Shown here one piece after another: positions 27,201 to 54,200 of a stretch of DNA of 64,000 nt. This DNA comes from Piromyces finnis finn. Lineage: Eukaryota; Fungi; Neocallimastigomycota. How positions within the stretch are numbered: position 1 is the stretch's first letter; each line of letters opens with the position of its first letter. The stretch is from contig MCFH01000026.1 of NCBI GenBank assembly GCA_002104945.1, positions 434,001 through 498,000 on the forward strand, in the 5' to 3' direction. The notes beneath the pieces were generated by a model. It was not told where the DNA came from. It searched no databases and saw only the letters and a program-made list of their open reading frames with translations. A program made the translations under genes and the position numbers.

Positions 27201-28108
27201 TGGGCCTTGTATAATGAAATGGAATTTGGTATCCAGAAATGTTCAACGATGGTGATTCGTCCTGAATCAATAGAAAATCAGAACAAGAGAGATCCAACAT
27301 TTTACTTAGCAGGACAACCCATTCCAACTACTGATTGTTATACTTATCTTGGTGTTCCATTTGATAAGAATCTGTCCCTTAAACCAGTTATTAAAACTCT
27401 TAATAACAAGGTTTTGAAAGGACTTTTTTCAGTCAGTAAATTCTTAAGAAATCCTAATATTCCTATTCCCTTCAAAAAGCTAGTACTTAATTCACAAGTG
27501 ATTAGCAGAGTTTCATACTTTGCACCATTACTTGGGTCCAATAAAGCTAGGTCTAGGATTGCTCAGAAGCATGTTAACAGAGGAATACGATGGGTTGCCG
27601 GAGTTCATAAAGCTGTATCGTTTATATCTTTATACTCTATCTCAAAAGATTTGAATATTCCTCCATTGTCAGCCAAATGTGCATTAGCTCAGGTTAGATG
27701 TTTTAACAAATGGAAAAACTCGAATTGTATTATCTCACACCTTGTCAATTACATTCCTAAATTTAGAAAATATACATGGTTCAAATCAAGTAGGACACTT
27801 GATAAAAAATTAAAGAAGCATGGAGATGTTAAAACAGTTAAAAACTTTTATTGAAAGATCTCAAAGGAAATTCAATCAAAGCACAATATTATGATGATAA
27901 TAAATTTATTGAAACTAAAGATTTTATTAAATTATGTTATGAATACCCAGAGTTTGCCTATGGCTTCTACTGGCTATTGAAAGCAAGAAGCGGATACAAG
28001 TTGGATGCTAGAGTTGCCAAAGCTGCTAAATTTGTTGATCCAGTTTGTCCTAACTACTGTCCATGTTGCAAGTGTGGTGTTCAAAGTATTAAACATTGGT
28101 TATTAGAT
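24231..28108 (+). pseudogene. Disrupted LINE ORF, copy B: N-terminal extension + APE + RT
   Basis: Nonsense TAA at 26748-26750 (AAA in the duplicate) and a 1-bp deletion at ~27852 (tattgaaag vs tattggaaag) split it into ORFs 24231-26750 and 26829-27854. Confidence 0.9.
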
Positions 28109-30778
28109 CCTAAGAAGGCCTGGAAATGGATCAAGAAAACTGCAAAAATAGGAAAAGATTCTTTCTTTATTGCTCAACCAATTAAAAATAAAAATGGAGA
28201 ATTAGTTGTTGCTACAGAAGAACAACTTGAAGTGTGGCATGATCATTTCGAAAACCTTGCATCAGATCCAAGTGGTGTAAGTCTTGATTTGGAGCATTGG
28301 TATGAAGAACCAACGAATAAACGTTTTTCACTTCCTATGCTTGATGAGTGGGATATCAACCAAGATATTAGTATTGATGAAGTCAAGTCAGCTATCCTCA
28401 CTACTCCAAATTATAAAGCATCAGGTCCGGATGGTATTCCAATTGAATTTTACAAAGCATTAGTTCCATCAAGTAATGATTCTAATAATGCTTCAGATAA
28501 TAATTCTTCTGGTAATACTACTTCAGATAATGATGCTCATGGTTTAAATTTTATTCTTAAATTATTCAACCGTATTTGGGATGGAGATTTCCCCAACTCA
28601 TGGAATGAATCCAGTATTGTTTCTATTCCTAAGAAGGGAGATTTGACAGATTGTGATAACTATCGAGGTATATCACTTATCAATAATGGTATTAAGTTGA
28701 TTTCCAAAATTGTCACCACTAGAATCCCAGAATATGGTCTAAAGAATAATTTCATTAGACCTGAACAATTTGGTTTTCGAAAAAAGGAAGAAAGTATCAG
28801 TCTTTTCATTTCAATCCAAGAAATATGCCGTAGACGTCAATTAGATAATAAAGAGACATATTTGGCCTTTTTAGATCTCAGGAAAGCATACGATTCAGTC
28901 CCAATCGGTAATATTCTCCATAAATTAGATTGTTTAGGAATCCGAGGTAAGAGTCTACAATTTATCAAAAATTTATATTTAACATCTAAGGCTAATGTCA
29001 AATTAGATGGACAATTCTCGAAATCTTTTGATGTGAAGAAAGGAGTCCGTCAAGGTTGCCCTCTTTCTCCTATTCTCTTTAATTTCTTTATTAATGATAT
29101 ATTTAGAGAGTGCGAAGATCTAGGAGTCAGTTTAGGTGACACTCGATGCTGTGGTGGACTTTTTGCAGATGATATAGTTATTTGTGCTCCAACAAGAGGA
29201 TGCTTAAAAAAGATGCTTAGAAGAATTAATGAATGGGCATTGTATAATGAAATGGAATTTGGTATCCAGAAATGTTCAACGATGGTGATTCGTCCTGAAT
29301 CAATAGAAAATCAGAACAAGAGAGATCCAACATTTTACTTAGCAGGACAACCCATTCCAACTACTGATTGTTATACTTATCTTGGTGTTCCATTTGATAA
29401 GAATCTGTCCCTTAAACCAGTAATTAAAGCTCTTAATAACAAGGTTTTGAAAGGACTTTTTTCAGTCAGTAAATTCTTAAGAAATCCTAATATTCCTATT
29501 CCCTTCAAAAAGCTAGTACTTAACTCACAAGTGATTAGCAGAGTTTCATACTTTGCACCATTACTTGGGTCCAATAAAGCTAGGTCTAGGATTGCTCAGA
29601 AGCATGTTAACAGAGGAATACGATGGGTTGCCGGAGTTCATAAAGCTGTATCGTTTATATCTTTATACTCTATCTCAAAAGATTTGAATATTCCTCCATT
29701 GTCAGCCAAATGTGCATTAGCTCAGGTTAGATGTTTTAACAAATGGAAAAACTCGAATTGTATTATCTCACACCTTGTCAATTACATTCCTAAATTTAGA
29801 AAATATACATGGTGCAAATCAAGTAGGACACTTGATAAAAAACTAAAGAAACATGGAGATGTTAAAGCAATTAAAAACTTTTATTGGAAAGATCTCAAAG
29901 GAAATTCAATCAAAGCACAATATTATGATGATAATAAATTTATTGAAACTAAAGATTTTATTAAATTATGTTATGAATACCCAGAGTTTGCCTATGGCTT
30001 CTACTGGCTATTGAAAGCAAGAAGCGGATACAAGTTGGATGCTAGAGTTGCCAAAGCTGCTAAATTTGTTGATCCAGTTTGTCCTAACTACTGTCCATGT
30101 TGCAAGTGTGGTGTTCAAAGTATTAAACATTGGTTATTAGATTGTCCAACATTTAGAGATATCCGTATTAAACATTATGATTCCATAGTTCAGCTACTAA
30201 ATTTTTTCAGTCAACGTAATTCCAATAGTCCTATCAATAATAATGAAAATGTTAATATCAGTAGAGATAGTAATAATATTAATAGTAATAGTAACAATAG
30301 TAATTGTAACAATAGTAATTGTAACAATAGTAATAATAACAATAGTAGTAATAGAAATAATAATATTAGTAATGATAGCAATAGTGATGATAATAATTCT
30401 AATTTAGATAGTAATTTAGTTAATGATAGTAATAGTTCTAATAATCCGGTGAATATTAATGTGTATGATTATTCTAGTGTGTGCAGTAAAATATTTAAAT
30501 TCCTTCTTGGGGGAAGAAGTTTTAACAATATTAATTACAATTCAAGGGAATGGAAAGAACTTTGTAAGTGTCAGATTCAATCTGGTACTAATGAAGGAAC
30601 ACCATTCTTGACGGTAACCGCGGAACTTCTAACCAAAATCATGCCTTTTGCTATTGGCCAGCAATGGTCAACATTCAAAGGGTTTGAAGCAATAGCCAAG
30701 AACGTCAATGTGGAAGAAACAATAAGACAGGCCAGGATGGCCAGCGCAACCAATGGAGATTATAATTTTGTCCCATAA
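27851..30778 (+). CDS. Chimeric 975-aa LINE ORF: C-terminal CCHC segment of copy B fused in frame to an intact linker-RT-CCHC of copy C
   Basis: Junction HWLLD|PKKAWKW at 28108/28109; uninterrupted RT domain with FADD. Confidence 0.85.
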   Translation: MKDLKGNSIKAQYYDDNKFIETKDFIKLCYEYPEFAYGFYWLLKARSGYKLDARVAKAAKFVDPVCPNYCPCCKCGVQSIKHWLLDPKKAWKWIKKTAKIGKDSFFIAQPIKNKNGELVVATEEQLEVWHDHFENLASDPSGVSLDLEHWYEEPTNKRFSLPMLDEWDINQDISIDEVKSAILTTPNYKASGPDGIPIEFYKALVPSSNDSNNASDNNSSGNTTSDNDAHGLNFILKLFNRIWDGDFPNSWNESSIVSIPKKGDLTDCDNYRGISLINNGIKLISKIVTTRIPEYGLKNNFIRPEQFGFRKKEESISLFISIQEICRRRQLDNKETYLAFLDLRKAYDSVPIGNILHKLDCLGIRGKSLQFIKNLYLTSKANVKLDGQFSKSFDVKKGVRQGCPLSPILFNFFINDIFRECEDLGVSLGDTRCCGGLFADDIVICAPTRGCLKKMLRRINEWALYNEMEFGIQKCSTMVIRPESIENQNKRDPTFYLAGQPIPTTDCYTYLGVPFDKNLSLKPVIKALNNKVLKGLFSVSKFLRNPNIPIPFKKLVLNSQVISRVSYFAPLLGSNKARSRIAQKHVNRGIRWVAGVHKAVSFISLYSISKDLNIPPLSAKCALAQVRCFNKWKNSNCIISHLVNYIPKFRKYTWCKSSRTLDKKLKKHGDVKAIKNFYWKDLKGNSIKAQYYDDNKFIETKDFIKLCYEYPEFAYGFYWLLKARSGYKLDARVAKAAKFVDPVCPNYCPCCKCGVQSIKHWLLDCPTFRDIRIKHYDSIVQLLNFFSQRNSNSPINNNENVNISRDSNNINSNSNNSNCNNSNCNNSNNNNSSNRNNNISNDSNSDDNNSNLDSNLVNDSNSSNNPVNINVYDYSSVCSKIFKFLLGGRSFNNINYNSREWKELCKCQIQSGTNEGTPFLTVTAELLTKIMPFAIGQQWSTFKGFEAIAKNVNVEETIRQARMASATNGDYNFVP

Positions 30779-31362: not shown

Positions 31363-34300
31363 CTATTTATTATACCATTCGTTATTGTGTTTGTCTATTA
31401 AAATAACATTTTTACATTTAAGATTGTAATTACATTCAATATAACCAACTCCAATATAACCTTCATCTTCGTTACATTGACAAGTATCATTTGAAACTAT
31501 AGAAGTAAAATCATTTTCACATACACTACAATCATAATGAGTTATAGGATAGGAACAAGAATTATTTATATCATTTTCTACATGACATAAACTTGTATTA
31601 GAAAAATCACATTTTTCAACTGTATTCTTAAATTTAATATTTGGTACTCTTCCATATAAATTTTCATTATTTTGTAATTCACTATTAATAATGAATTATT
31701 TTATTTTATTTTTTTTTTATAATAGAAGAAAAAAAAAAAATTAAAAGTATGTAAATATATAGATATTCAGAAATAAAAAAAAATATAAGGAAAATTTTAA
31801 TATTATAAACTTTTTTTAAAAAAAAATATCAAATATAATATAAATATAATATTAGTTTTACATTTCAACAAGATTAGTTAATTTTTCTAATTCTTTTGTT
31901 GGTATCTCCCCAGATAATTTATTGTTAGATAGTGACCTGTAATTTTTGTTTTATATAAATTAAAAAATAATATTAAAAAGGAAATTAGAAAAAAAAATTA
32001 TATATATATATAAAAGGAATAGATATATTTTCTCTATTGAAAATTATAATAATTTTTACAAATGTAATAAGCCTGATAAATTTCCAATTTCTGAAGGAAT
32101 ATTATCAGTAAGTCTATTATTTTGTAAATGCCTAAACATCATTTAATAAAATTTTGTTAAAGTTATATTATTATTACTATTACTACTATGTTTTAAATAA
32201 AAATAAAATATATATATCAAGAGGAAGAATAAAAAAAAATAATTATTATATAATAAAATTTACAGCGTTTTTAAATTTGTTAAATTTCCTATATCTGAAG
32301 GAATAAAATCATAAATATAATTATCATTTAATTTTCTATTTTTTTTTATACATTAATATATTAGTATTGGGAAACATATATTACAATAATAATTATATAT
32401 ATATTATTTACAATATTGTTAAATTCTTTAATTTCCCAAATGAGGAAGGAATAGACGAATATATCTGATTTTTTTCTAAATTTCTATAAAATATTATATA
32501 TATTATAATATATTATATAGGAAGGTTAATAATAAAATTTATCTTTTTTTTTTATCATATTAAAAACATAAATAGAATAATAATAACAAAAATAATAATT
32601 ACATAATCTTCAAATTTACTGAATCAGAAAAAGCATATAAAAAGAAATTGCCAAAAATGTTGCAGTTACTGATAGATCTTTTTGTAAAAAAAAAAAAAAA
32701 GGTTTATAGAAAATATTTATAAATTATACTAATAAATATTTTATATTTATATATATATATATTAATATTACAATTCTTCTAAGTATGGCATAGGGTTAAA
32801 AACTCTTGGAAATTCGTTTAAACCATTTGTATTTCTATATAATAAAATAAAGTTTTTTTTTATTTATTATTTCCTTTTTATTTAATTTTATATATAATAT
32901 ATATATAAATATTTTTCATACTCAATTTTAATAGATATTATATGGCCATCCTCATTACAGGTAACATGACTATCTAAGCAACAATCATATGATTCTTTTT
33001 TTCTAAGTAATCTATTCACCATATTACATTCCTCTATTACTGTTTTACTATTATTGTCAATGATATCGTATTCACTATCATCATCATAACTATTATTTGT
33101 GATGTCATCATTATCAATAGTTTTATAAAAATACTTGTAATTAAAAATGTCAAAGGTTGAAATATTATCTGGCCATGAAGAAACGGGATGGGTTGGATTA
33201 ACTTTATCAGGATGACTCCAATCTTCATGTGTTTCAAGAGAAAGACGACATTCTCCACCTTCTTCTGATAACTTTTTATTTATATATTTTGAGGTATCTT
33301 CCGGGTAGGTATGATGAAGTACAAAATCGTAAAAATATATAGCTTCTTCATCTTCTTCATCATTAGAATTTAAAGCTTCTTGATATTTTCTTTCAAGGAA
33401 GCTTTGTCTAGTATCTTGAATAAGTGAAACTCCTGAAATACCATAAGCATAAACATAATTTGGAACGGTATTCCGTGGATTTGAATAAACCAAGGAACGA
33501 ATATCAATTAAAAATTCTATTTCTTCATCCATTGGAATATCACAGTTACGATGGCTTAAATAATCCGAAATTATATTGTATTGTGAAAAACCAACACGTA
33601 ATTTAAAATCTTTTTTTTTCATAAATCGTGCTTTAATTGAAATTCCTTCTGGTGGTGCAACAAATCCATTATTATTTAATGATCCAATGTAACCATAATC
33701 TTGGTTAATTCCAGGAATAAATTTTATACAATTTTTTTTTTCAGGATCTTCTTGATATACCTCATTCAAAATATAATTTTCTTCTATAAAGTTTATACTA
33801 AAACCATGCTGTATGATACCATTCTTTATCATAACTGTTGGGTCTTTCTTTAAGAAAATACTATTACCAATAAAGATATAAACTGGCATACGACCATAAT
33901 TTCTAATAGTAAATCTAGTATATAAAGTGGGATCATCATCAAGTAGTTTACTTGAATCAATATCTCCAACCATTTCCATCCATTCATTCGTTGGTGGGGT
34001 AATATTTTCAATTTCATAATATGTATCCCTATAACTATATTTTCTGTTATAGTCTTCTGGTTCTATAACAAACTTTAAATCAACTAAGGATAGCCATTCT
34101 TGAGCTTGTATGGTAAAGTCATATTCACTTAAATCACTACATGATAATCCAATATTTTTACAAGTGTATCCTTCATTCTTCAATTCCTCAATTCCCGGAG
34201 CTACTAATTTTATTTCCGATTTAAATTTATGAAAAGAACCAAGATTAATATTAAACTTTACTCTTGGTTCTTTTGTAAGATGGAATTCAATATTTGAATA

Positions 34301-37300
34301 ATTTCTTTTTACTTTTTTTCCTGGTAGATATAAAATCATTGGTGAGTTCTCTGAATCATCACCATTTTTATTAGGAAAGTAAATTTTAGCATCACTAGAA
34401 CCATTTGTAACATCACCTTTATCCCATAAATAAGGTAGATCATTAGTTCCACGACTATACAAAGCAAGATTACCAAACTATTAAATTTTATTTTCATAAT
34501 GATTTAAAAATAATATATATATGTTAAAGTTAAAAATTTAATAATAAAGAGAAATCATGATTAATTTCCTTTTTTTTTTTTTCTTATATATATATTTATT
34601 TTTTGCTTTTAATATTTTATTTTATAATTATATAAATAATGGATATAAAAATATTACCATTTTATTAATTGTTCTACTTAAAGGAATATAAGGTGGATAA
34701 TAGATAATACTATTAATATATAATGTATTATCCATCTGAGTAGCATCTTGAATGACATACCTGTATGTAGGATAATTTTTATTATTTGGAAGTGGAATTG
34801 TATATTCCTCAAATTTTGTAGTTGCTTTAAATGTATATATAATATGATGTGATTCAGAACGATCAATACAAAGAATTTCAATATTGTGATCAGGATTTAA
34901 TACTTTCATATTTATCACAAGGTAACCGCCATCATAATTATTATCTGTTTTAAATCCAAAGCCTGGCCATGTAATTTGTTTTCCTTCCATGGAGCATTCC
35001 ATGTATAAATTATTTATATTATTGCATTTGACAGTTCCCCAACTCTCTTCTTTCCAATGTAACTCACCATTACTAAGAATAACATCTGGTTCATAAAGAT
35101 ATGACGTTTTATAAGGTAGTAAATTATCCTCATCAATATTTTTTATATCTTTATAATAAATATTTCTAAGATATAATGTAACTTTTCTATCATTGCCATA
35201 ATTTTGCCATGCAAATCTTTTAATACTTTTAATAAACGTATTTTCTTCATGATTCTTAATTTCTTGAGTGATAGTTTCCCAATCAGAATCCTATTTTGTT
35301 TTTATAAATATAAAATTTTAAATTTTAATAATGAAAATTTATTCATCATCATCATTATCATTATCATCATCATTATTATTATTAATTACTACTTATTATT
35401 ACTATTATTACTATTATTACTATTATTACTATTATTACTATTATTACTATTATTACTATTATTACTATTATTACTTTATTACTTTTATTACTATTATTAC
35501 TATTATTACTATTATTACTATTATTACTTTTATTACTTTTATTACTATTATTACTATTATTACTATTATTACTTTTATTACTATTATTACTATTATTACT
35601 ATTATTACTATTATTACTATTATTACTATTATTACTATTATTACTATTATTACTTTTATTACTTTTATTACTATTATTACTTTTATTTTTTATTTTTTAT
35701 TTTTTTTAATATTTTAAATATATAAATTATTTTTTAAAAAAAATCGACCAAACTACTATTTAACAAATAACAAATCAAAAAAAAAAAGTGAAAAATACAT
35801 ACTGTATATAAATATTTTCCTTGATCAATATTCTCCAAACCTTCAAAGGAAAAGAAATTTAACATTGTTTTACCATCAGCAGGTCCAAATTTGTAATCAA
35901 ATGTAAGAAAACCATATTGGGAATTTAAATTTTTATTTATTAATGAAAATCCAGCATTTTCAGATAATTTTACTTCAATTATTTCATTTTTAATTCTAGG
36001 TTCACTTCCAATATCCCATGAAATTTCTTCCCAACCCGAATTCCATTCTGACATGCCTTCTTCAAATATTGTTATTACTTGCCCTTCCTTTTCTTTTCCC
36101 TATATATTATGAATATATATATATATATAGGTTAAAAATTAAATTTTTTATCAATATTATTTTTTTTTCTGCTTTGAAGAAATGTATTAATGACACAAAT
36201 ACATAATACATAAATATTGATAGAATTTTAAATAAAAAATACCTCTATTATAGTATCTCTATTAAGAGGAATATAAGGTGGATAGTATGTAATACTTTTA
36301 ATATAAAAAATATTATAACCTTGAGATACTTCTTGAATGGAAAACTTATAAGTAGAATCATTAGGATTTCTTGGAAGTGGAAATATATATTCAACAAATT
36401 CCGTAGTTGCTCTGAATGTTTTAAGAATGTACTGTTTATTATTATGGTAATAGCCAATAATATTAATGTCCTTATCAGGGTACAATACTTTAATATTAAT
36501 ACCAATATAACCACCATCATAATTACTATTATCTGAAAAATCAATATATTGTTGATTATTCAAAGAACATTTCATTAAAGAATTTTCGATTGTACATTCA
36601 GGATAACTTTGCATATCCAACCATTTTAAAGCATTTTCGTTAACGAAGACATAAGGTTCATATAATGAAATAATATTATATAATGGTATATTATTTTCCA
36701 CATTTAATTGATTGTTAGCCGTATACCTATTTCATTTTATATTAATAAAAATATTTTTTTTAAAAATTTTTTTTCAAGTAGATATATACAAATATAATAT
36801 AGAAAAATAAAATAATTTACAATGATTTTAAATTTGGTAAATTTTCAACTTCTGATGGAATAGATCCAGTTAATTGATTATTTTGTAAATATCTATTTTT
36901 TCATTTAATAGTAATGGAAAGCAAAATTTGTTATTATTTATATACATATATATTTACTATATTGCTAAATATTTTATTTTAATAAAAAATAAAAAAAAAT
37001 ATTATAAATTTTACAAGTCCTCTAAATTTGATAAACTTCCAATTTCTAAAGGAATTGATCCAGTTAACTTATTATTATGTAAATATCTATTCGTTTTTTA
37101 ATAAAAATTAAAATTAATTATTAGGTTATTATGTAATTTATTTTTTTTACAAATCCGTATTTTTTCTATGAAAAGAAGTATATAAATTAATAATGAATAA
37201 AACTTTACATTGCTTTTAAATTTACTAAATTTCCTATTTCTGATGGAATGGAATTAGTGAATTTATTATGTTGTAAATATCTATTATAGATAATATAATA

Positions 37301-39896
37301 TAAAAAGACATTGTTATTTTACTTTTTTTAAATATAAACAATTTTTAAAAAAAAACAAATCTTCATACAAATATTTTAGTTTTTTTAAATTTCCAATTTC
37401 AGGAGGAATGGCGTTGCTTAATTGGTTTCCAGCTAAATATCTGTTCATAAAGAATAATAATATTAATATATATATATTAATATATATATATATATATTTA
37501 AAAAAAATAAAAACTTACATTATTTTTAAATTTACTAAATTTCCAATTTCAGAAGGAATTGCACCACTTAAATCATTATTGGCTAAATATCTGTAATAGC
37601 AATTATTGTAAAATTATATTTTTATATTTTATAAAGTGATATATATGTATATTACAACTATTATAGTAGATCTTACAAATATTGTAGTTTTGTTAATTTT
37701 CCAATTTCAGAGGGAATAGTTCCAGAACATAGATCATTATCTAGATTTCTATATTTTATCAATAGTATATGTTTTTAATTTTAAAAAAATATTAATAATA
37801 AAATTTATATATTTTATATTTGTATTTCTCTTAGAGAATACTCGGTTAATTTATATATATAAATATAATTTTTACAAATATTTCAGATTCCTTAAGTTTC
37901 CAATATCTTTAGGGATTGAATCACCAATTTAACTACCTTTTATTTCTCTATATATATATAAAAGTATTTTTTTAAAATAAAATTGATGATTATAAATATA
38001 TCATTTTTTAATTAAAAATGTTTTTATGATATTATAAATTATTTAGTATTACAATTCTTCCAAATATGGCATGGATCCAAAAGATTCTGGTATATGACTT
38101 ATAACATCACCCCTTTTTTAATAATAAAACCAATAAAGTATAATAAAATAGTAATTAATTAGTAATGTTTTGTTTTTTTTATCTTCTTTTTTCTTTGATT
38201 AAATATTAATATAGTTGTATATTAAACATTATATTGAGTAGATAGAGTATAGAAAAATTAAAGTTTCATACTTTAATTTTATAGAAATAATATGGCCATT
38301 ATTATTACAAGTAATTTCGTCATATAAACAACAATTGGTAGTTTCGTATTTCTCAAGTAAACTATTGACATATTTACATTCATTTATTTGTCTATTGTAA
38401 TATTTATAATAATTAAGAGTTATGGTGTTTTCTTTTAGTACAGAAATAGTATCTAAACTAATTGAATCCGGCCATGAGATAACTGGATTAGTTGGATTAA
38501 CTTTTTCAGGATTACTCCAATCTTCATGCGTTTCAAGAGCAAGACGGCATTCTGGACCTTCTTCTGATAATTTTTTATTTGTATATTTTGAGATATCTTC
38601 TGGATAGGTGTGATGAAGTACAAAATCGTAAAAATATAAAGTTTCTTCATAAGCATCTGCTGCTTCTTGACCTTGACTTTTTTTGATATCTTCAATAGGA
38701 GAACTACTCATAAAATGGAAACTGGTAATATCATTTGTTAAAATAGATTTCGAATTCGAATAAACTAAAGAGCGGATATCAATTAGAAATTCTATTTCTT
38801 CTCCAATTGGGATATCACAATTACGATGAATTAAATAATCAGGAATTAAATTAAATTCCTTTTTATCACCAATAGCTAATATAAATTTATTTGTTTTCAT
38901 AGAACGAATCTTAATTGATATTCCTTCTGGTGGTGCAACTGATATATTATTTTTCAATATAGCGTAGTAGCCATAATCCTTATCAGTTTTAGAAACAAAT
39001 TTTACACTATTTTTTTTTTCAGGATCTTCTGGGCATACCTGATCACCAAAATAAGTATCACCAGTAATTGTATCCTTTTTCCAGCTACAATTTGAAAAAT
39101 CGTTTTGAATGATACCATTTTTTACCATAATTGTTGGTTCCTTCTGTAAGAAAATACTATTACCAATAAAAACATATACAGGCATAGTCCCATAATTTCT
39201 AAAAGTAAAGTGGAAATAATTATAATCATCATAGTATAAATTTTTTATCTTATCTTTGTCAATTTCACCAATAACCTCTGACCAGTCTGCTGTTGGAGAA
39301 GAAAGATTTTCAATTTGATAGGAAAAATATTTAGTTTCACTTTCACCTTCATTATAAGAATCATCTGATCGTTCAAATTCTAAATAGAATCTTAGGTCTA
39401 CCTTCGATAACCATTCTTGAATATTTTTTTCAAAATTATAATTATTTAAATTGGTACAGGAAAGTCCAATAGTTTGACAAGTATATCCTTTCTTGATTAA
39501 ATCAGCAACTTTTGGAACCACTAATTTCATTTCGGATTTCAACTTATGTAATGATGTAAGCTTTATGGGAAAGTCTGATAAATCAATAGAAAAATCAAGA
39601 AATGAAAATGATTTATCTTCTTTTCCTGGCAAATATAAAACTAATGGATAATTACTAACATTATCTATTAACTCAGCATTATCATTTTCATTATTATTCA
39701 AACTAAAATCAATATCAGAGGATGGGAAATATATATCAGCGTCATTGGAACCTTTTACATTTTTGTTCCAATATTTAGGTAGATTTCTTTGACCTCTACC
39801 ATAAAATACAAAGTTACTAGTAATTTTATTGGAAAAAATACATTTTAATTTACAAAAAACTAATGGTATTAATAATAATTTATTTTTAAATTTCAT
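31363..39896 (-). CDS. Secreted multidomain protein, ~1968 aa, ~20 exons: signal peptide - NTD1 - LRR array - 3x CBM29-like - NTD2 - LRR array - EGF-like; one in-frame TAA in LRR exon 37876-37947
   Basis: Exons: 39896-38272; eight LRR mini-exons 38112-36821; 36726-36243; 36099-35803; 35290-34658; 34477-32922; six LRR mini-exons 32834-31862; 31681-31363. All junctions are GT-AG and phase-consistent (5907 nt). LRRs read YLxNNxLxGxIPSEIGNLxNL. The 3' end could have extra exons. Confidence 0.72.
35343..35685. repeat. Compound (TCA)n/(TACTATTAT)n microsatellite inside intron 35291-35802
   Basis: Directly visible; it generates the poly-Y/poly-L/ITI ORFs. Confidence 0.95.
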
Positions 39897-40364: not shown

Positions 40365-43300
40365 ATGAATTCTTACTGAAAAATATTAATATATATAATT
40401 TATTTAGCTTGTTTATTCTATTATTTGTTTTTAATACTGTGTCAATTTCAGGTAGATATCACTTAAGATATAAAGAACTATAAATTCAAAAATAAAAATT
40501 ATATGTTTTGTTAAAAAAATTTTTCTAATTAATTATATTTAAAAAAAATAAAATAAAATTATATATATATTTCAGTGAAAGGAAGAGAAAATGGATACTA
40601 TGTAGATGATGAGGAATACTTAATTCACTGTACTGATCAAAATGAATGTACCAGAATACTAGATGTTAGTACCACTGGATACTATTTTGATCAATCCAGT
40701 CAAATTGATGAAACAACCTATTCAAAATTGATTTTTTGTAAAGATGCTACACATTGTAAATCTCAAACAATGAATAAAGGTTATTACATTGATGCCCATT
40801 CACCCCAAAATATTATTCATTGTGTTAATAGTATTCCGTATATTGCTTGTTCTTCTTCACCTCACAATGATCATTTAAACTATCCCATCTATTATTTTGA
40901 TCCTAACAAAAATAGAGTCATTACATGTACAGCTGAAAGTTGTGACTTAGTCGATAGTTATATTAAGGGTTACTTTTTAAATTCAGGTGATGATTCTGAT
41001 AATTATAAATCTATTCAATGTTCGGGTGAATCAACAAAATGTTCTAAAGTTAAAACTGTAGAAAAGTGTTATAAGGCTGGTTGTGTTTTTTATAATAAAA
41101 ATTATGGATACAGTGATGCAACAATTTTGTTATGCTTACGTGTGGGAGATGAAGGATGTACATATATGTATATTAATAATAATATGAATTATTTTTTATA
41201 TAATATAATTTCAAAAGCTGAAAATGATTTTCCAGGAGCTAAAGCTAATGAAAAGGTAACGGTTTTAATGTATAAGGATGGAACTGCTTTAATGTATATT
41301 GATGGTAATGATTTTTTTTTTCTCTTCGAATATTAAATATAATTTTATATATTATATATATGTATACATTATTAAAAAAAATGAATTTATACTATTTATA
41401 AAAAAATATTTTTTAATATAAAACAAATTTTAGATATACCTACTTGTGCTAATGCAGAAGGTAAAGAAACACCAGAATCAACTACTTCTATTTGTAAAAA
41501 TAGTGGAATTGGTCTGATTGAAGAAGGAAATTATTGTAAAATGGGGTCAAATATTTATAAATCAGGTAATAATTCTTGTGAATTACAAGTATTGGAAGAA
41601 GATACCCTTTATTTCTTCTTTTGTACTCATTATAATAGTTGTATCAGACTTAAAGAAAGTGAAATTACAACATCTCATAAAAAAAGAAATGTTGTTATTT
41701 ATAAATTAATATCAGATGAAAAGAAAAAACTTGTAAAACTAGACCATAATAATGTGTGTTTCATTATTAACAAAAGTGTTGTATGTGGGTTAGATGCGGA
41801 TGGAGGTTTACTTACCATTCCTACATTTAAGAGTGATCACATGATTGACGGTTCCAGTGTGATAGATTCTTCAAAAAATGAGTATAGCAGGATGATTATT
41901 TGTACTAGTTCTTCTTCATGTATATCTAAACCGGCTGTTGCTGGTTACTATATAGATGCATTATCTAAAAAAACAAACATCATTAAATGTGAAGGAGAAC
42001 CAGTGACTTGTACCATTTTTTGGAGTAGCCGATATGGAGATACTTATTTTAATGGTGGGATTCCAGACATAAATTCCTTGAAAGAAATGTTTATTCAATA
42101 TAATAAAAATGGATATATTCTCGTTGATGGGGAAGATAATGGCTATTATCTAGTTGAAAATGATCTTATTCATTGTACACTTCAATATGGTTGTATTAAA
42201 GTTTTGGATCCCAATACTGATACATTTTATCTTGATCAAGCCAGTCGAATTGGAGAAACGAACATTTATAAAAATATAATCTATTGTGAATCTGCTTCAA
42301 ACTGTTATCATTATATGATATATGAAAACAGATTATGTTATCAAATTGATGTTCGTAATCCGGAAAATATTTTTCGTATTGATGAAGCATCAGAAAATTA
42401 TAGTTATTCTTCTGTACCTCATGGTGGTACATTTGATATTCCAACACATTATCTTGGATGTGATAATTTTCGAATCATTACTTGTAATGATGCTGGTTGT
42501 TATTCAGTTGAATATAATCAAATAGGTTATTTTATCAATTCCGGTTCAATTATTTCCTCTGACAATTACAAAGTAATTAAATGTAATGATGGTGATAATG
42601 AGCCATGCGACATGGAAGAAAATAAATATATATATAATGAATGTTCAGGTACCGGAATGATATGTATAGATGATATAATAAATCCAAAAACAGTAATCTT
42701 GTGTTTAACAGATGAATGTGAAAAGGATTCAGAAAAGGTAGAAATTAAAACTGACCCTAATGCAGTAGCTATCACTGTATCATTTCCTCCAAATTCATAT
42801 TTATTTGGAGTTAAAGGAAATCAAAATGTAGATGTTAAACTAAATAATGATGGTACTGCCATGATTGTTAAAGGTAAATATAAAAAAAATATTAAAAATC
42901 AATGTTTTATAAATATTATATGATTATATGTAATAAAAAAACGTTTAGAAATGAATTATGGTTAAATTTTATTTTATTATTTTATTTTTAAAAAAAAAAT
43001 AAGTTTTTTAATAATCTCTATTATAATAAATTTAATTTTTATTAAAATTTAATTATCTTTATAGATATGTGTGTTTTTAATGAATCGAAAGATGGAAGAT
43101 GTATACCAAGTGGTGATTGTAAGTATATCTTTTAAAGGAATAAAATTAAAGTATATATTTTTATTTATTTTTATATTTTTTGTTTTTTTTTTATTATGTA
43201 AAAAGTGTCAAAAAATTATTTATTAATTTTTAGAAATATTTTTTATAAAATAAAGGTCATAAATGTTCAAAAGGATATATTCCAATGGTTCCAAGTGAAG

Positions 43301-46300
43301 CAAAAGCTGGAGATAAAGTAAAGATAGTTAATTTCAAATATGATGAAAGTCCATCTTGTGAATTTGTAGATGTCACTGGTTATTTTGTTGGACCAACTGG
43401 ATTTTATGTTCAATGTATAAAATCTAAAGGTTGTAAATTAATGGCTAATCCTGATGGATCTGAATCTCTTCCTTCCAAATATACTTTCGGTAATATGGAT
43501 TATTTTGATGATTCTCTATATCTTAATATGGGTCATTATCAAGAAGAAGAAGAAGGTAAAATGATCAATTATTTTTTTAAGTTTCCAATGAGCTATAAAC
43601 CAGAAAAGAAATATTTAATTTCTCATAATCCATATTATTATGAATCTGGCAAGAAAGTTGGTATTTTTAATTGGCATGATGAAGCTGATTATTACGTAGT
43701 TAATTATGGTAGAAATTATGTACTTTTTGATTCAACGTTTAATAGTAAGTTTTCAAAAAAAAAAAAAAAATACAATTTTTAAATTGTATTTAATATGAAT
43801 CACAGAAAAAAAAAATAACTATAACATTAAAAGAAAAAAAAATTAATATATTATATCTTTTTATTTAAATAATTAAAAAAAAAAAGAACATGAATACTGC
43901 TCTATAAATAATAATAAATTATTAATCAATAATAAAGATTTTTGCTCCGCTGAATCTTTTGGAAAATACTATGATTGTATTGATGGTATTTGTAAATCTA
44001 AGGATAAGACAAAAAATACTAGATCTGATGGTAATTAATAAATAGAAAAGACAAAATTTATTATATATATTTATATTTATTTTTTTATCATTAAATACAT
44101 TAAGAAATCATTCATAAAAAATAATATTATTTTTTTTATTTTTTTTAATTATTATTATGATACTACCAAATAGAAATAGAAAAAAATTATGAAATCGTCA
44201 GTGGTAATAAATCCTTGGATGAATACAAAGGTAGTTTTTTTTTTTCAAAAATATTTATTATTTTAACAATATTACATAAATTAAATTATGTATTTATATT
44301 ATTTATTTAAAACCCTATCATAAACAAAAAAATATTTCTTTCAACAGAGGAAGATCCTATTGTTGGTATGTAAAAAAAAAAAAAAAAAAGAAATATTAAA
44401 AATTAAAAATTTAAATCTTTATTTAAATATAAAAATCATATATGATAATAATAATAACTATAATAATTATATGTTTAGGCTTAACACTATGTACAAGTAC
44501 TGAATTTAATGAACTTTGTAATTCTGGGGAAATTACAAAGGACCATTTTTGTATTACAAAAGATGGTGAATTATATAAATCCATTACAGATCATTGTCAA
44601 TTACAATATAAAGGCATTTACATTTTTGAATTTGACGAAAACAGCTACAAGTCCATTTATACTACAACAAATGGCATATTAATTTATTCTTGTGATAATT
44701 ATAAAACTTGTTCTCAATTTATTAATTCGGCTTATTATGATGTCACCAAAAAAATGTTCTATAAATGTTCCCTCGGTCAATGCCAAAAGTATAAAGGTAT
44801 CGATGAAATTAACTCGGGTTATTATGTCAGTGGTGCTACAGATAATAATAAAAAATATAGTGAACTTATTCAATGTACTGGTTCTACTGTTAATACCTGT
44901 AGTAAAGTAACTACTATTAATAATGGCTATTATTTAAATGGAAAAGCCATCAATTTAACTTACGCGTTAATTAAATGTGAAGAAGGAAAATGTATAGAAA
45001 TTAAATCTGTCTCTAAAGGTTATTATCACAGTGCTGAGAGTACCAAACCATTAATTTATTGTGATAGAGTTTGTGAATTGACGGAAGGCATTTCCAACTC
45101 CAATTATATTATTGATCAAGACAGTTCTGTAAATGAAAGTACCAAATTTATTACATGTGTAGATACTACTCATTGTAGTTCCGACATTGTTTCATCATCT
45201 GGATTTTTCATTGATGGTTCCAGTTCCAGTGATATTATATTATGTTCTGTATATCAAAGTCCAACTCTAGAAAAGTCAATACGTTACTATTATGATGGTA
45301 ATGATATAAAAACTGTAGAAGAAAATAATAGTGAAAATAAATATATTAAATGTGAAAATATTCCACACAAAGGTACAGACAAAGCACCAATGAATTTCCT
45401 TACTGATACTGGTATCATTCATTGTATTAGTTCAGGTTGTAGTTTTATTCAAGCTCCTGAAACGGCTGAAGCCAATTTCCATGTTAGTAATAATCAAGAT
45501 TTATTAATGTGTAACAATTCTAAATGTTATAAAGTGGTTGATGTTAAAAGCAAACCCTATGCTTATATTTCTGCCAGTGATTCTGATTACAAAACACTTA
45601 TTTTTTGTGAACCAGGAGAGGAAAAGAATATTTGTATTGAAAATGATATTTCCAATAAAATAAATACTAAAGGATCTCTTTTCTTTATTGATGGCACTTA
45701 TCCTTCAAAAATTATTAGTTGTACTTCTTCTGAGGGATGTAAATCCATTAGTCTTTCCTTCAATTTAATTAATGAAACACTTTACTTTATTGATGGTACG
45801 GATGTTAAAAATATCATTACCTGTAGTAAAGATGGTTGTAATAGAGGTAATAAAATAACTGGAACACTATCCTTTACCGATGGTTTTGACTCTTCCAAGA
45901 CAATTTTTTGTGTTGAAGGAAAAGAATGTATCTCTTCAAAAAGTAAATATCTTTAATTTTTATTTTTAAAAAAAAAAAAATTCTTATGAATAATATTTAC
46001 AATTTATTGAATTTTTATATTTAACTTTTTTTTATTTTTGTTAATTAACATTTGTGTAACACATTTTAATTCCCTTTTTTTTTTTTACCTATATTTCAAA
46101 ATAAAAAAAAAAAACTAGGTATTGATTACTGTTCAAAGATAAATGAAAATGAAGCATGTGAAATTAATTCAATTAAAATTAATAATGGAATGCATTGTAT
46201 AAAGGATGGTCATATATATCAATCTATTAATGATAAAGATAATTCATATTGTGTTAAGATATCAAATGGTGAAATCATGCTAAAGAAAGGTATGAATGGT

Positions 46301-47703
46301 TATGAAAAAGGTATATTTGGTGTAGATTCTGGTTTAATTTATTCTTGTACCACTTCTGATGGATGTATTCAACTTCTTTCCACTTATTATTTAAGAATTG
46401 AGATAGATGATGTGAAAAATAATGTTAATCGTTTCCTTTACACCTGTAATATTGATGGAGATTGTTATTCTGAAAATAAAATAGCCAAAGGGTACTATTT
46501 AAGTAAAATTAAAGAAAATGGAATGAATACATTGATTTATTGTTCTAGTAGTGAAGTTTCCAATTGTCAACATAGTTCTGAAATAGATAAAAATGGAAAT
46601 ATGCTATTCGAAATTCCAAATGGACAATTCCTTGATCAAGGAAATACTAAAAATATTATTAAATGTCCCTCGGGTAAAAACTGTGAATCCGAAATGGGTA
46701 TAACCGATTTTGGGTATGCTTATATTGATAATGAAAATTTTAAAATTGTGGATAATCCTGTTTCACCAAAACAAAAAATAAAAATTTATCCATCGGTTAT
46801 CCTATGTACAAAAGAATTTGGTTGTAAATCATATCTAGGTGAAACGACTAAAGATTATGGTTATATTAATAGTAATAATAAAGAAGTCATTGTTTGTACC
46901 GCAAATTACGGTTGTGAAATTCCAATTGAACATACTTCTACCACTTATTATAATTATGCCATGGATCCAATATATATTATTACTTGGCCCTACCCCAATG
47001 ATAATTGTATTATAAATAAAGGTAAGGATATTTAACTATTGAAAAAAAAAAACTATAATTAAAGATTTATTATTTAATGTTATTTCTATATTTTAACTAT
47101 ATTTTAGATTGCAATGTAAAAACCGGTATTAATTGTGTTGACAAGACCTACTATTTAGTGAATGATATAAAAGATTATATGGTTCAAACAAATAAAGACA
47201 CGCCAAGTCCACTCTTTTATTGCAAAGCTACAAATAATAAGACTATAAAATGTAACGAAGTTAATGGTATTGGTTATTATATCAATAATGAGAAAGAAAT
47301 TTATACTTGTACCAAGGATGGTTGTACCGGTTCAGAATTTGATAAAAATACAACAGGAAAAATCGTTGCTACTGATTATTATCAATTTAAAATTTATTTA
47401 ACAATGAATATTACTACAAAGCTTAAATCACCAGCTAAGAATTATATGGTAGCACATGAAGGTGCTGGTAATATTTTTGGTACAAAACAAAATGGAGAAT
47501 ATGCAATTATTACAGTAGATGAAAATTCCGCTACCTTAAATACGACCATTGAATCTAATCATGGTTCATTTTTCTACACTAACTCTGATACGAATGAAAT
47601 TTTAAAGGGAGGAGAATGTCCAATTAGTAGCATTATTGAATTGGCTATTTCTGAATATATATGTACAAAAGAAAGTAATATTTGTACTGAAATAATTTAC
47701 TAG
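40365..47703 (+). CDS. Scaffoldin-like Cys-rich repeat protein (~1976 aa, 11 exons), with an apparent 1-bp deletion at codon 3
   Basis: Exons 40365-40451, 40576-41304, 41434-42873, 43065-43118, 43256-43744, 43938-44030, 44174-44230, 44348-44365, 44479-45942, 46119-47021, 47108-47703; all phase-1 junctions. Many G-Y-Y/F...I-x-C...C repeats, the motif described for anaerobic-fungal scaffoldins. Adding one base at ~40370 gives signal peptide MNFLLKNINIYNLFSLFILLFVFNTVSIS. Confidence 0.75.
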
Positions 47704-51218: not shown

Positions 51219-54200
51219 ATGAAATTTAATAGAAATATTAAATCATTAATACAGCGTTTGGCTGTACTTTATTACGTAAATACAATATTAAAAACTGTTC
51301 AATCAGTTAATGTTCAAAAAACAAATTGTGATTATTTAAAGAGTATATATAAAGAATTGGATATATCAACTAATTGGAATGATAACACCAATGATTGTTG
51401 TAAATTAAAGGGTATTCAATGTAATCCAGATTTTAATATCATTCGCATGTAACTATTATTTATTCGTTAATTTCAAATAATACTATTAATTTTAAAATGC
51501 AACAACTTATTAATTTTTTATTTATTTAATTTAAATTTCAAATGCAATAACTTTTATTCTTCTTAAAGTGATTTAAGTAAAAGTAAAATCAAGGGAAAAT
51601 TATCAGAAAATATTGGATTTTTAACCAATTTACAATTTATGTAAGTTATACGTTTTAATTACTTATACCAAAAAAAGAAATTAAAATTTCAGAAATTAAA
51701 CTTTTCTTTTTTGAACTATTAGAAAACTTGATAATAATGAAATATATGGAAATATACCACAAAATATTGGAGAATTGGTTAATTTGGAAGAGTTGTAAGT
51801 AATAAAATAGATTTTTAAGAATATTTTAAAGGGTTGTTTATAACTAGTTTTTTTGTACAATTTACAGAATATTAAATAAAAACAATCTTTCTGGAACAAT
51901 TCCAAAAACTCTTGGATCACTCAAAAAACTTAAAGAATTGTAGGCATCACGACAAATGATTTTGATTTTTTTTTTAAAAAAAAAAAAAAGTTATAAAACT
52001 ATTAAAAATTATTATTAAATGTAAGAAATATATGGTTAATTCTTTCTTTTTTAATTATTAATATAGAAATCTTGGTGATAACGGTTTATATGATTATATT
52101 CCAGATGCATTAGGTTCTTTATCAAGTATTAATAAATTGTAAGCAAAAAAGGAAATAATTATTTGATATATATTTGATGGCTATTAATTATCAAGTACCT
52201 TTTTTTTTATTATTGTTATTTTATATAGATATCTTGAAAACAATTTATTAGAAGGCTCAATACCAACTTCATTAAGTTATTTAAATAATCTGGAACATAT
52301 GTAATTATTATTTGACTATTTTTCAATAATGAAAACATTGATTTTTATATTTCATACTTTTAAAATTTATCCATTTTTTATATTATTAATTCTTTAAACT
52401 CTTAAAAAAAAAAATTTTTTTTTTTCTATACCTTTAGCAATTTATCGAATAATAATAAATTAAAAGGAAAAGTTCCAACAATGAATAATTTAAAATCATG
52501 TGAATATAGTAATACTAATCTTTGTTATTTGTCAAATGAAAAATGTAAATCAACATTAAAGGAATGTACATCAGATCAAATTAATGACACCGATAACCAA
52601 CTTATTATTCAAAACAATAAAGAACAACTACAAGAAGGAGATGAAGGTCAAACGATTCAAGAAGGAAAACACGAATCAATTAAAGATGAAATATATAATT
52701 GGCTCTATCGTCCTTATATATTTGCAATTATTGTTGCTGTTTTTGTCATCATAATTCTTTTATTATTTTGTATTACTAAAAAATGTATAAAACATAAATA
52801 TGAAAAGAAGCTTAAGATGTCAATGGAAAAGAAGCAATATTTTGTGAATCATTCAATAAAACATTATCAAAACCAAAATAATGATAAAACGAATGTTGGT
52901 GATTTCAGTAGTAATGATGAAAATAATCATCGTTCCCATAATGATCCCACTACTATATCAGATACAAGAAGTAATATAAATAATTATCAACCAATATATC
53001 AGGATAATCTCACCATTGATTCTCAGCAAGAAAATAATTCAAATGTTGGTAGTCATATTATTTCACCAAATCTTTCTCCAGCCAACTTTCAAATTCCAGC
53101 AATGGCCTATGCTTCACTACAACATCGTTCAACAGTGACATCCCAATTTGTAAATAATGGTGATTATTATACTGTTGATCAAGGTGGTAACTTTGATTCG
53201 CATAACTCAAGATACGGTAGTAGTTCTTACGTAAACTTAAATAATGGTCAATTCCATAATACTCGTTCACGTCCAAGAACTCGTCCACGTAGTAATACAG
53301 GTGGACATAGCCCCGTAAATACCTCATTATCTCAATACAATATAAATCGTTATAGCTATAGTGGTGGTGGTATGCTTTATAGTACCACCACTAGTAATCC
53401 TAATAATAATCGTAATAATCGTCATAGTATTGGCATTTATTCTAACGTTAATTCTTATTTGACTAGTCATTCCGGAGGCAATATTTCTAATTATGGTACA
53501 AGTGAACCAGGAAGTGTTAATTATGATGATAATGATTATTCTAACGAAAATGGCATAACTTACACTATCACTGGAAAATCCAATCCATCCATAACTGAAC
53601 CAAAAAATAATCAAAATAAGAATGTAGTATCTAAACAAGGAAATACATTCACTCGTAATACTGACGCAAAGGATAGCGATAAGGATGACGATGATGATGA
53701 CGACGGTAGCTCCTCTTCTTCCTTTGTTGCAAAATTAAATTCATCAGAGGATGATGATTCAGATATTGATCTACCAAATCATTGTGTGGCCCGAAAAACC
53801 GATAATCATAATATTGCTGGAGATGACGATAGTGATCATGATAGTGGTAATGATAGTGATAATGAAATTAGTAAAGACATTGAGGAAAAGGATCACTATA
53901 ATGAAAAAAGTCAAGATGAAATTGGACATTCTATTTCAATGGAGGCAAATAATGGTCATGATAATGCATCCTCCTCTGAAGAAAATATAACAGAAATAAT
54001 AACTACACCAACAACGTCAACTTTATCAACTCCCAACACCTTAGCTAGTAGTAACAGCCCTCAACCATTGAGTAAAGCGGAGTTAGCAAAAAGAGAAAGT
54101 ACCTACATTAAAAATCATAAAAGAAAAATTCCAATATATAAAAGTCGTACCATTCGAGTAAATTCTGTTGTTCGTAGAGATCCTACAAATAATCCTCGAA

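Follow-up and report, generated by a model that had tools for sequence, protein, structure and literature searches.

A candidate gene was analysed in a 64,000-nucleotide stretch of the gut fungus Piromyces finnis (assembly GCA_002104945.1, contig MCFH01000026.1, positions 434,001 to 498,000; hereafter the window), where it occupies the minus strand between positions 39896 and 31363. The locus can be read as a single transcription unit for a secreted, non-catalytic and unanchored multi-domain protein, which would have arisen by gene duplication and capture of a domain cassette; we place the probability of this reading at roughly 0.6. A total of 20 exons could be chained in frame from the start codon at 39896 to a TAG stop at 31365–31363, and all 19 introns were of the GT..AG type and in phase. 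The chain encodes, in order, a signal peptide, a module of 480 amino acids (aa) designated A1, a Cys cap, approximately nine plant-type leucine-rich repeats (LRRs), three modules designated W1, Wmid and W3, a second copy of module A (A2), approximately seven further LRRs and a Cys-rich end. About seven domains of the carbohydrate-binding module (CBM) type are thus combined with two LRR solenoids. The codon total was 1968 (891 + 1077 in the exon table), made up of exons E1–E10 (2673 nt, remainder 0) and residues 125–1201 of the deposited protein ORX48690.1. The window has approximately 20% G+C (GC) content and short GT..AG introns, and apart from one TAA the coding sequence of approximately 5.9 kb was free of stops and of broken splice sites.

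Exon boundaries were set manually with frame bookkeeping, by extending the splice logic of the deposited ORX48690.1 upstream. Single exons or the deposited ORX48690.1 were used as queries in the homology and fold searches, and concatenated exons served only for counting frames and stops and for the identity check.

Gene layout and deposited protein calls

The deposited protein ORX48690.1 (UniProt A0A1Y1V829, 'hypothetical protein BCR36DRAFT_73100 [Piromyces finnis]', 1201 aa) could be placed with 100% identity on the minus strand at 36614–31366 in 11 exons. Its start is an internal Met within W1; conserved strands at the N terminus of the W domain are thereby cut off, and its domains, which are of extracellular type, have no signal peptide in front of them. 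The only protein call found for A1 (P0028) is a 555-aa unspliced first open reading frame (ORF) that reads past the GTATGA donor into intron 1 (38229–38272). LRR array 1 was missing from both protein calls found for the locus. Judged from the sequence, the ends of both calls look wrong, and the corrected gene model predicted here merges these two existing calls with an unannotated LRR array.

The joints between the parts could be followed in the exon structure. The large ORFs 39896–38232 and 34477–32891 carry A1 and A2, and each ends in the Cys cap followed by a canonical donor. The junction between E9 and E10 was exactly in frame, and the exon of W1 also carries an LRR half-repeat in phase with E9. 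The W3/A2 splice across 34657–34478, an intron already named in an earlier note made from the sequence alone, was found in frame with GT..AG ends and is used in ORX48690.1 as well. Upstream of A2, two in-frame stops precede position 34477, and the exon opens with the N terminus of the mature domain, GNLA[FL]Y[GS]RG. DNA alignment with four paralogs revealed that the DNA just 5′ of 34477 corresponds to decayed signal-peptide-coding DNA, which now forms the 3′ part of the intron. A separate start with its own signal peptide for A2, at the ATG at 34497, was considered and rejected on the basis of these stops and this alignment, the ATG being out of frame.

The Cys cap CC...TC...GHIISIK follows both A1 and A2 and is succeeded by 24-residue LRRs with the consensus L.NN.L.G.IPSEIGNL.NLK.L. 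Each small exon of 72–75 nt carries one LRR, with phase-2 GT..AG introns in the deposited model. Pfam analysis of array 2 on ORX48690.1 revealed LRR_14 (53.7 bits; cut-off 40), LRR_8 (50.2; 27), LRR_4 (37.8; 27) and LRR_1 (31.4; 20.6). When the cassettes of array 1 were searched exon by exon, LRR_1 or LRR_4 could be recognized in five of six, below threshold, with E-values of 7e-4 to 0.04.

The first exon encodes a typical signal peptide. No hydrophobic segment was present in ORX48690.1, where the maximum 19-residue hydropathy was 1.08 compared to 1.7–2.3 in the tails of the related proteins P0049 and P0030, and no plausible extra 3′ exon with a glycosylphosphatidylinositol (GPI) tail was found downstream. 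Pfam analysis did not detect a CBM_10 dockerin on the exon pieces or on ORX48690.1, and no transmembrane (TM) segment, kinase, GPI signal or catalytic domain was detected in the encoded protein. The last exon matched neither EGF nor any other Pfam family at E ≤ 1, its CxC...G..C spacing being suggestive only.

The earlier note had described two homologous modules of about 500 aa, each followed by a Cys cap and plant-type LRRs (IPSEIGNL), in a protein that is non-catalytic and devoid of dockerins; the repeat of 24 residues per 72-nt phase-2 exon and the Pfam scans bear this out, as does the similarity of the two modules given below. Its EGF-like end has to be given up, and the sensor role it had proposed finds no structural basis in a protein that lacks a TM segment and a kinase as well as a GPI signal and a dockerin.

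CBM29-like modules and the module A heads

W1 and W3 could be aligned with 42% identity (E 2e-36). NCP1, a small cellulosome component, contains two modules of CBM family 29 (CBM29) and a dockerin. When a profile of the W family, which included W1, W3 and Wmid, was searched against PDB sequences, the NCP1 CBM29 chains were the only matches besides dockerin structures (E 9.1e-5 to 1.8e-2; 1w90 9.1e-5, 1oh3 1.1e-3 and 1gwk 1.4e-3). Profile positions 371–493 were aligned with chain positions 16–132, which is exactly the W module, and no further non-dockerin chain was obtained at E ≤ 10. Pfam analysis gave no match on W1, Wmid or W3.

The fold was assessed on an AlphaFold model of the paralog P0052, on which the structural CBM29 match rests as a proxy for W1 and W3. 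The model consisted of three beta-sandwich domains with a predicted local distance difference test score (pLDDT) of approximately 90, and its W domain is 40–57% identical to W1 and W3. The Foldseek search with the three-domain model was swamped by multi-beta-sandwich targets (Cry, Vip3 and reelin), which could be resolved by a rigid-body wide search. Among 48,161 chains, the best match was 1gwk_A (CBM29-2) with Z 17.4 and a root-mean-square deviation of 2.5 Å over 134 of 141 residues, followed by 1wcu_A (Z 16.6); the next family, CBM8, reached 13.9, approximately 3.5 Z below 1gwk_A. By profile and predicted fold, W1 and W3 are distant CBM29 relatives, with membership at the level of a remote subfamily.

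Ligand binding by CBM29-2 involves the aromatic residues W24, W26 and Y46 and the polar residues K74, E78, D83, R112 and Q116 (PMC9079177). At these positions, W3 has Trp at W24, Thr at W26, Trp at Y46, Arg at R112 and Gln at Q116, and K74 and E78 are not kept. The same pattern was seen in most members of the W family, with Trp at W24 and Y46, Lys or Arg at R112 and Gln at Q116, and with W26, K74 and E78 not retained. Going by CBM29-2, single chains of beta-1,4 glucan or mannan are the probable ligands of W3. The earlier note had taken the modules with the motifs YDGGYIGINIK and YDGGYLVINMK for CBM29; the profile matches (1w90 at 9e-5) and the fold (Z 17.4) sustain this kinship, but the binding aromatics are found only in W3. 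Its count of three Trp-containing modules was likewise correct; W1 and W3 are homologous, and the middle one is a different beta-sandwich.

Wmid occurs as a contiguous domain in the paralog P0052 (residues 55–208, 51% identity). Its best fold match was 4itc_A, a gingipain cleaved-adhesin domain (Z 10.7), and the atlas leads pointed to the CBM27/CBM30/SGBP-B clan. Wmid is modelled as a beta-sandwich of another CBM- or adhesin-like type and not as a homolog of W1 and W3. A Wmid-like fragment elsewhere (C185, L027:4219-4614) has an internal tandem duplication (ADNKTIDLLAFDYDGN twice), adjoins LINE-like ORF debris and is probably a degenerate remnant. The intron that splits Wmid in the window contains a 9-nt microsatellite, TATTATTAC, at 35374–35687 (34.8 copies, 94% matches), which mimics a minus-strand Asn/Ser-rich ORF.

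In the P. finnis assembly (56.5 Mb, 232 contigs), W modules could be found outside the window only at locus C180, which holds the gene P0052 (BCR36DRAFT_360758, 'CBM10 domain-containing protein'). P0052 encodes a signal peptide, a Wmid-type domain, an extra beta-sandwich (D2), a W domain, a Thr-rich linker and three dockerins (CBM_10). Its relatives comprised 16 proteins in Piromyces and Neocallimastix (including P0053–P0067) and further sample-derived sequences. On sequence comparison, dockerin genes of the P0052 type are the likely source of the Wmid/W cassette. In Piromyces sp. E2, a protein of 1829 aa (P0051, PIROE2DRAFT_16535) has approximately seven W modules alternating with Cys-rich repeats and a long Thr-rich tail, with no Pfam match above threshold, and is thus another poly-CBM29-like protein that lacks annotation.

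The two copies of module A, A1 (39896–38272) and A2 (34477–32922), were 48% identical over approximately 530 residues (E 2e-162). Pfam analysis revealed no match for module A or for the other exon pieces. A scan of 1.84 billion representatives gave 23 relatives and a word-indexed search gave 29; the latter were 35–54% identical to A1, with E-values down to 1e-153, and came from Piromyces, Anaeromyces, Neocallimastix and rumen-type samples, all the named ones belonging to these three genera. Approximately six module-A loci are present in the P. finnis assembly. All 25 family-invariant residues were kept in A1 as well as in A2, and in the FastTree phylogeny A2, which has a long branch, was recovered as the sister of A1 with a support of 0.946. 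A dead module-A paralog lies at the end of a 21-kb contig (C84:15132-16501) and contains many stops, eight of them in one match.

Module A was found in three settings: alone, with a Ser/Thr-rich linker and a GPI-signal-like tail (the C113 paralog, approximately 560 aa); with Cys-rich repeats (P0005 and P0007, and internally in P0041); and, in proteins approximately 730 aa long (P0030, P0048, P0049 and P0009), followed by the Cys cap, 5–7 LRRs and a GPI-like tail. The AlphaFold model of module A, built from 32 sequences, was mostly beta with a pLDDT of 81 and a predicted template-modelling score (pTM) of 0.81. The best Foldseek matches were tandem CBM22-1/CBM22-2 (E 4.5e-8), reelin repeats, a xylanase with CBM36, tandem CBM51 and CBM8. 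The rigid-body wide search matched the N-terminal half (approximately 24–258) with CBM29-2 (Z 12.2), 1wcu_A (11.9), CBM30 (10.3) and CBM11 (10.2), and the C-terminal half (approximately 251–436) with CBM8 (Z 12.0). A sequence relation of module A to the W family was considered and rejected (hhalign probability 0.5%), and comparison of its two halves by BLASTP gave no sign of an internal duplication. As modelled, module A, for which the earlier note had offered no interpretation, is a gut-fungus-specific head of two CBM-type beta-sandwiches, and it may bind carbohydrate; most proteins of its family appear to be GPI-anchored.

The in-frame stop and competing explanations

Codon 568 of the chain is a TAA (37931–37929) in the LRR cassette E3 (L-E-I-K-G-S-stop-I-G-D-S-I-P-K-D-I-G-N-L), the sole stop in the 2673 nt of E1–E10. 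Each alternative acceptor near E3 still reads into this TAA. Left without E3, the chain has 2601 nt for E1–E10, zero stops and 1944 aa overall; skipping would restore the frame because the cassette is frame-symmetric. Production of the full protein thus requires that E3 is skipped, unless the TAA is a base-call error or a very recent mutation. Approximately 1400 codons 3′ of the TAA run without a further stop in a genome of 20% GC. With one lesion in the whole chain at such a GC content, a long-standing constraint on the whole chain can be argued, and if the gene is dead, its death must have been very recent. Of the single protein of about 1968 aa proposed in the earlier note, the exon chain, start, stop and number of codons could be recovered, and codon 568 is the part that does not fit.

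Read as one gene, the locus most likely goes back to a surface-protein gene specific to gut fungi, with signal peptide, module A and LRRs, that was duplicated in tandem. A Wmid/W cassette of the dockerin-protein type would have been captured between the two copies, with duplication of W. The downstream copy would have lost its signal peptide, the DNA of which turned into the 3′ end of an intron, and the upstream copy would have lost its tail. The product would be secreted and unanchored. Each of its two heads would consist of a pair of CBM-like beta-sandwiches, and it would further comprise two LRR solenoids, two CBM29-like modules and a single additional beta-sandwich. In plant cell walls, single chains of beta-1,4-linked glucan or mannan could be bound by W3 and possibly also by the heads of module A, with avidity gained from the presence of several binding modules. 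The LRR solenoids may be rigid spacers, or they may offer docking surfaces to other proteins, for example to the many GPI- or TM-anchored LRR proteins of P. finnis. The protein could in this way link plant fibre to the surface of the fungus, with no signalling on its own. A fibre-binding or bridging role is suggested by the multivalency and by the LRR surfaces.

Several observations weigh against this reading. As single-sequence queries against PDB, W1, Wmid and W3 gave only noise and no CBM29 match; the similarity to CBM29 is remote (17% identity), and the equivalent of W26 is non-aromatic. The binding face of W1 is degenerate, as the W24 and Y46 positions are lost by deletion or substitution and only the Lys and Gln are kept. 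At the sequence level nothing connects module A with CBMs, as its profile matched nothing among the PDB sequences. Each of the two called proteins is the sole member of its sequence cluster, and the fused architecture was present in no other protein of the searched databases; consequently, conservation cannot vouch for the fusion. The splice sites of E3 are equal in quality to those of its neighbours, with no sign of E3 skipping, and expression of the fused gene is presumed from its sequence. The spliced W3/A2 junction had no exact match in the JGI metagenome contigs, where an exonic control was likewise absent, so that the scan is uninformative.

The TAA could be real and E3 constitutive, in which case the gene has recently died, its product has at most 567 residues (signal peptide, A1, cap and approximately 1.3 LRRs) and the rest is a young pseudogene. 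We consider this unlikely, although it has to be taken seriously: the TAA is unavoidable with any acceptor, the E3 splice sites are as canonical as those of the neighbours, array 1 is in neither called protein (the A1 call ends at 555 aa and ORX48690.1 begins in W1), and dead copies occur elsewhere in the module-A family, for example on contig C84. A dead gene is nevertheless hard to reconcile with one lesion in 1968 codons and 19 introns, as neutral sequence at 20% GC gains stops fast, and the frame would be rescued by skipping of the frame-symmetric cassette; a base-call error is also possible. The locus could instead be divided into two independent genes, one for a module-A protein of 555 aa and one for a W/A2/LRR protein of 1201 aa that begins with the W1 Met, and the LRR exons between them would be dead. 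Such a division matches the calls P0028 and ORX48690.1, and stand-alone module-A proteins of approximately 560 aa do exist (the C113 paralog and P0002). Unlike these paralogs, however, the 555-aa call ends without a GPI-like tail after crossing a canonical donor into an intron, and the 1201-aa model has no signal peptide despite its extracellular-type domains and loses the first W strands at its start. The seven LRR cassettes in between are intact and in phase, with E9–E10 exactly in frame, and two separate genes therefore appear improbable.

A further explanation concerns function. Neither the W modules nor module A would bind glycans; they would be beta-sandwiches of a generic kind, acting as spacers or binding proteins in an LRR-based protein–protein adhesin, and the likeness to CBM29 would reflect shared ancestry only. 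The missing aromatic platform of W1, the Ser or Thr at the W26 equivalent across the W family, the lack of a sequence link between module A and CBMs, and the occurrence of such beta-sandwiches in reelin, ephrin receptors and toxins would all agree with it. Nearly all W-family members, including W3, nevertheless conserve Trp at W24 and Y46 and Gln at Q116, W and Wmid modules are also carried by non-catalytic, dockerin-bearing proteins of the cellulosome type, and the nearest structural neighbours are almost all CBMs; the spacer explanation is thus given very little credence. The reading as one gene for a secreted protein with CBM29-like modules is preferred to all of these.

Coordinates, surroundings and known systems

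Coordinates of the exons, introns and modules of the LRR/CBM29-like gene in the window
Feature	Position	Strand	Remarks
E1	39896-38272	-	signal peptide MKFKNKLLLIPLVFC, module A1, LRRNT-like Cys cap CCLYDEITCNNNGHIISIKL; donor GTATGA at 38271
LRR array 1, E2	38112-38053	-	60 nt
LRR array 1, E3	37947-37876	-	72 nt, phase 2, GT..AG; holds the TAA
LRR array 1, E4	37748-37677	-	72 nt, phase 2, GT..AG
LRR array 1, E5	37590-37519	-	72 nt, phase 2, GT..AG
LRR array 1, E6	37440-37369	-	72 nt, phase 2, GT..AG
LRR array 1, E7	37280-37209	-	72 nt, phase 2, GT..AG
LRR array 1, E8	37086-37015	-	72 nt, phase 2, GT..AG
LRR array 1, E9	36892-36821	-	72 nt, phase 2, GT..AG
E10	36726-36243	-	LRR half-repeat YTANNQLN running on into W1 (~36698-36243)
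Wmid, N-terminal part	36099-35803	-	ITIFEEGMSEWNSGWEEISW...QGKYLYT
Intron splitting Wmid	35802-35291	-	512 nt, GTATGT...AATAG
Wmid, C-terminal part, and W3 (one exon)	35290 to ~35132, ~35131-34658	-	
W3/A2 intron	34657-34478	-	180 nt, GTAATA...TTTAATAG, in frame
Module A2 and Cys cap exon	34477-32922	-	begins at mature-domain start FGNLALYSRG; no signal peptide or in-frame start
LRR array 2 exons	32834-32772, 32677-32603, 32483-32412, 32335-32264, 32131-32060, 31936-31862	-	
Last exon	31681-31363	-	final LRR, LRRCT-like Cys cap, further Cys-rich stretch, TAG stop

Pfam analysis of the ORFs neighbouring the LRR/CBM29-like gene gave nothing above threshold. Approximately 600 bp past its 3′ end, the window contains an ORF of the long interspersed nuclear element (LINE) type with a reverse-transcriptase-like region (27851–30778, plus strand). 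On contig C113, a longer, near-identical LINE copy (L013:5594-9064) immediately follows the stand-alone module-A paralog on its downstream side. On the other side, large plus-strand ORFs at 40575–47703, divergent from the LRR/CBM29-like gene, carry Cys-rich GYY.D....LI.C....C repeats with no Pfam match; repeats of this type also flank module A in P0005, P0007 and P0041 and alternate with W in P0051. The plus-strand ORF at 52436–55978 has an LRRCT-like Cys cap (42% over 38 aa compared to the last exon of the LRR/CBM29-like gene), a TM segment and a Ser/Asn/Pro-rich tail of approximately 1000 aa, and, judged by its sequence, probably represents the 3′-terminal exon of a further gene for an LRR surface protein.

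Little is known of how anaerobic gut fungi recognize plant fibre, attach to it and sense its polysaccharides. The locus yields a divergent, unannotated family of CBM29-like modules, present in dockerin proteins and here beside LRRs, and a gut-fungus-specific 480-aa double beta-sandwich head that lacks a Pfam model and is borne on GPI-anchored LRR stalks in relatives. The value of these observations is tempered by the occurrence of the fusion in one genome only and by the stop codon in the assembly. The literature search gave no paper on a combination of LRR and CBM29, and no other protein combining LRRs with a W module was present in the searched collections, which is in line with the earlier note, to which no description of this architecture was known.

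Plant malectin-like/LRR receptor kinases of the LRR-I class have a tandem beta-sandwich head of the carbohydrate-binding type followed by plant-type LRRs in a cell-surface ectodomain. The likeness is a functional analogy only, with no homology claimed; the window protein has no TM segment and no kinase, and malectin-like structures were absent from the top 50 fold matches of module A. It is conceivable, though doubtful, that gut fungi possess an independent counterpart of these receptors, a plant-wall recognition system in which module A/LRR/GPI receptors act with the window protein as a soluble bridging co-receptor or adhesin to beta-glucan and mannan, aiding attachment or substrate-dependent control of enzymes.

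Closer at hand are the module A/LRR/GPI proteins of gut fungi (P0049 of A. robustus, 'L domain-like protein'; P0009 of N. californiae, LY90DRAFT_663715; P0030 and P0048), which share with the window gene the signal peptide, module A, Cys cap, 5–7 plant-type LRRs and a Cys-rich cap. The A2 half of the window gene equals one such unit minus signal peptide and tail. In contrast to these proteins of approximately 730 aa, each a single unit that ends in a hydrophobic tail resembling a GPI signal, the window gene consists of two units, contains a CBM29-like insert and has no tail. The P0052 group resembles it in the order of the Wmid-type and W-type domains (51% identity for Wmid and 40–57% for W) but differs by its own signal peptide, by D2 between Wmid and W and by its dockerins, and it has neither LRRs nor module A. 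Compared to the CBM29-1 and CBM29-2 modules of NCP1 (1GWK, 1GWL, 1GWM, 1WCU, 1W8T–1W9F), the CBM29-like modules of the window sit between LRR arrays with no dockerin, and K74, E78 and D83 are not conserved. W1 and W3 nevertheless have in common with these modules the GG.L...MK motif, the Y..Y strand and the I/F-Q-[ED]-A strand, and NCP1 of Piromyces equi, from the same fungal genus as the window gene, is likewise non-catalytic.

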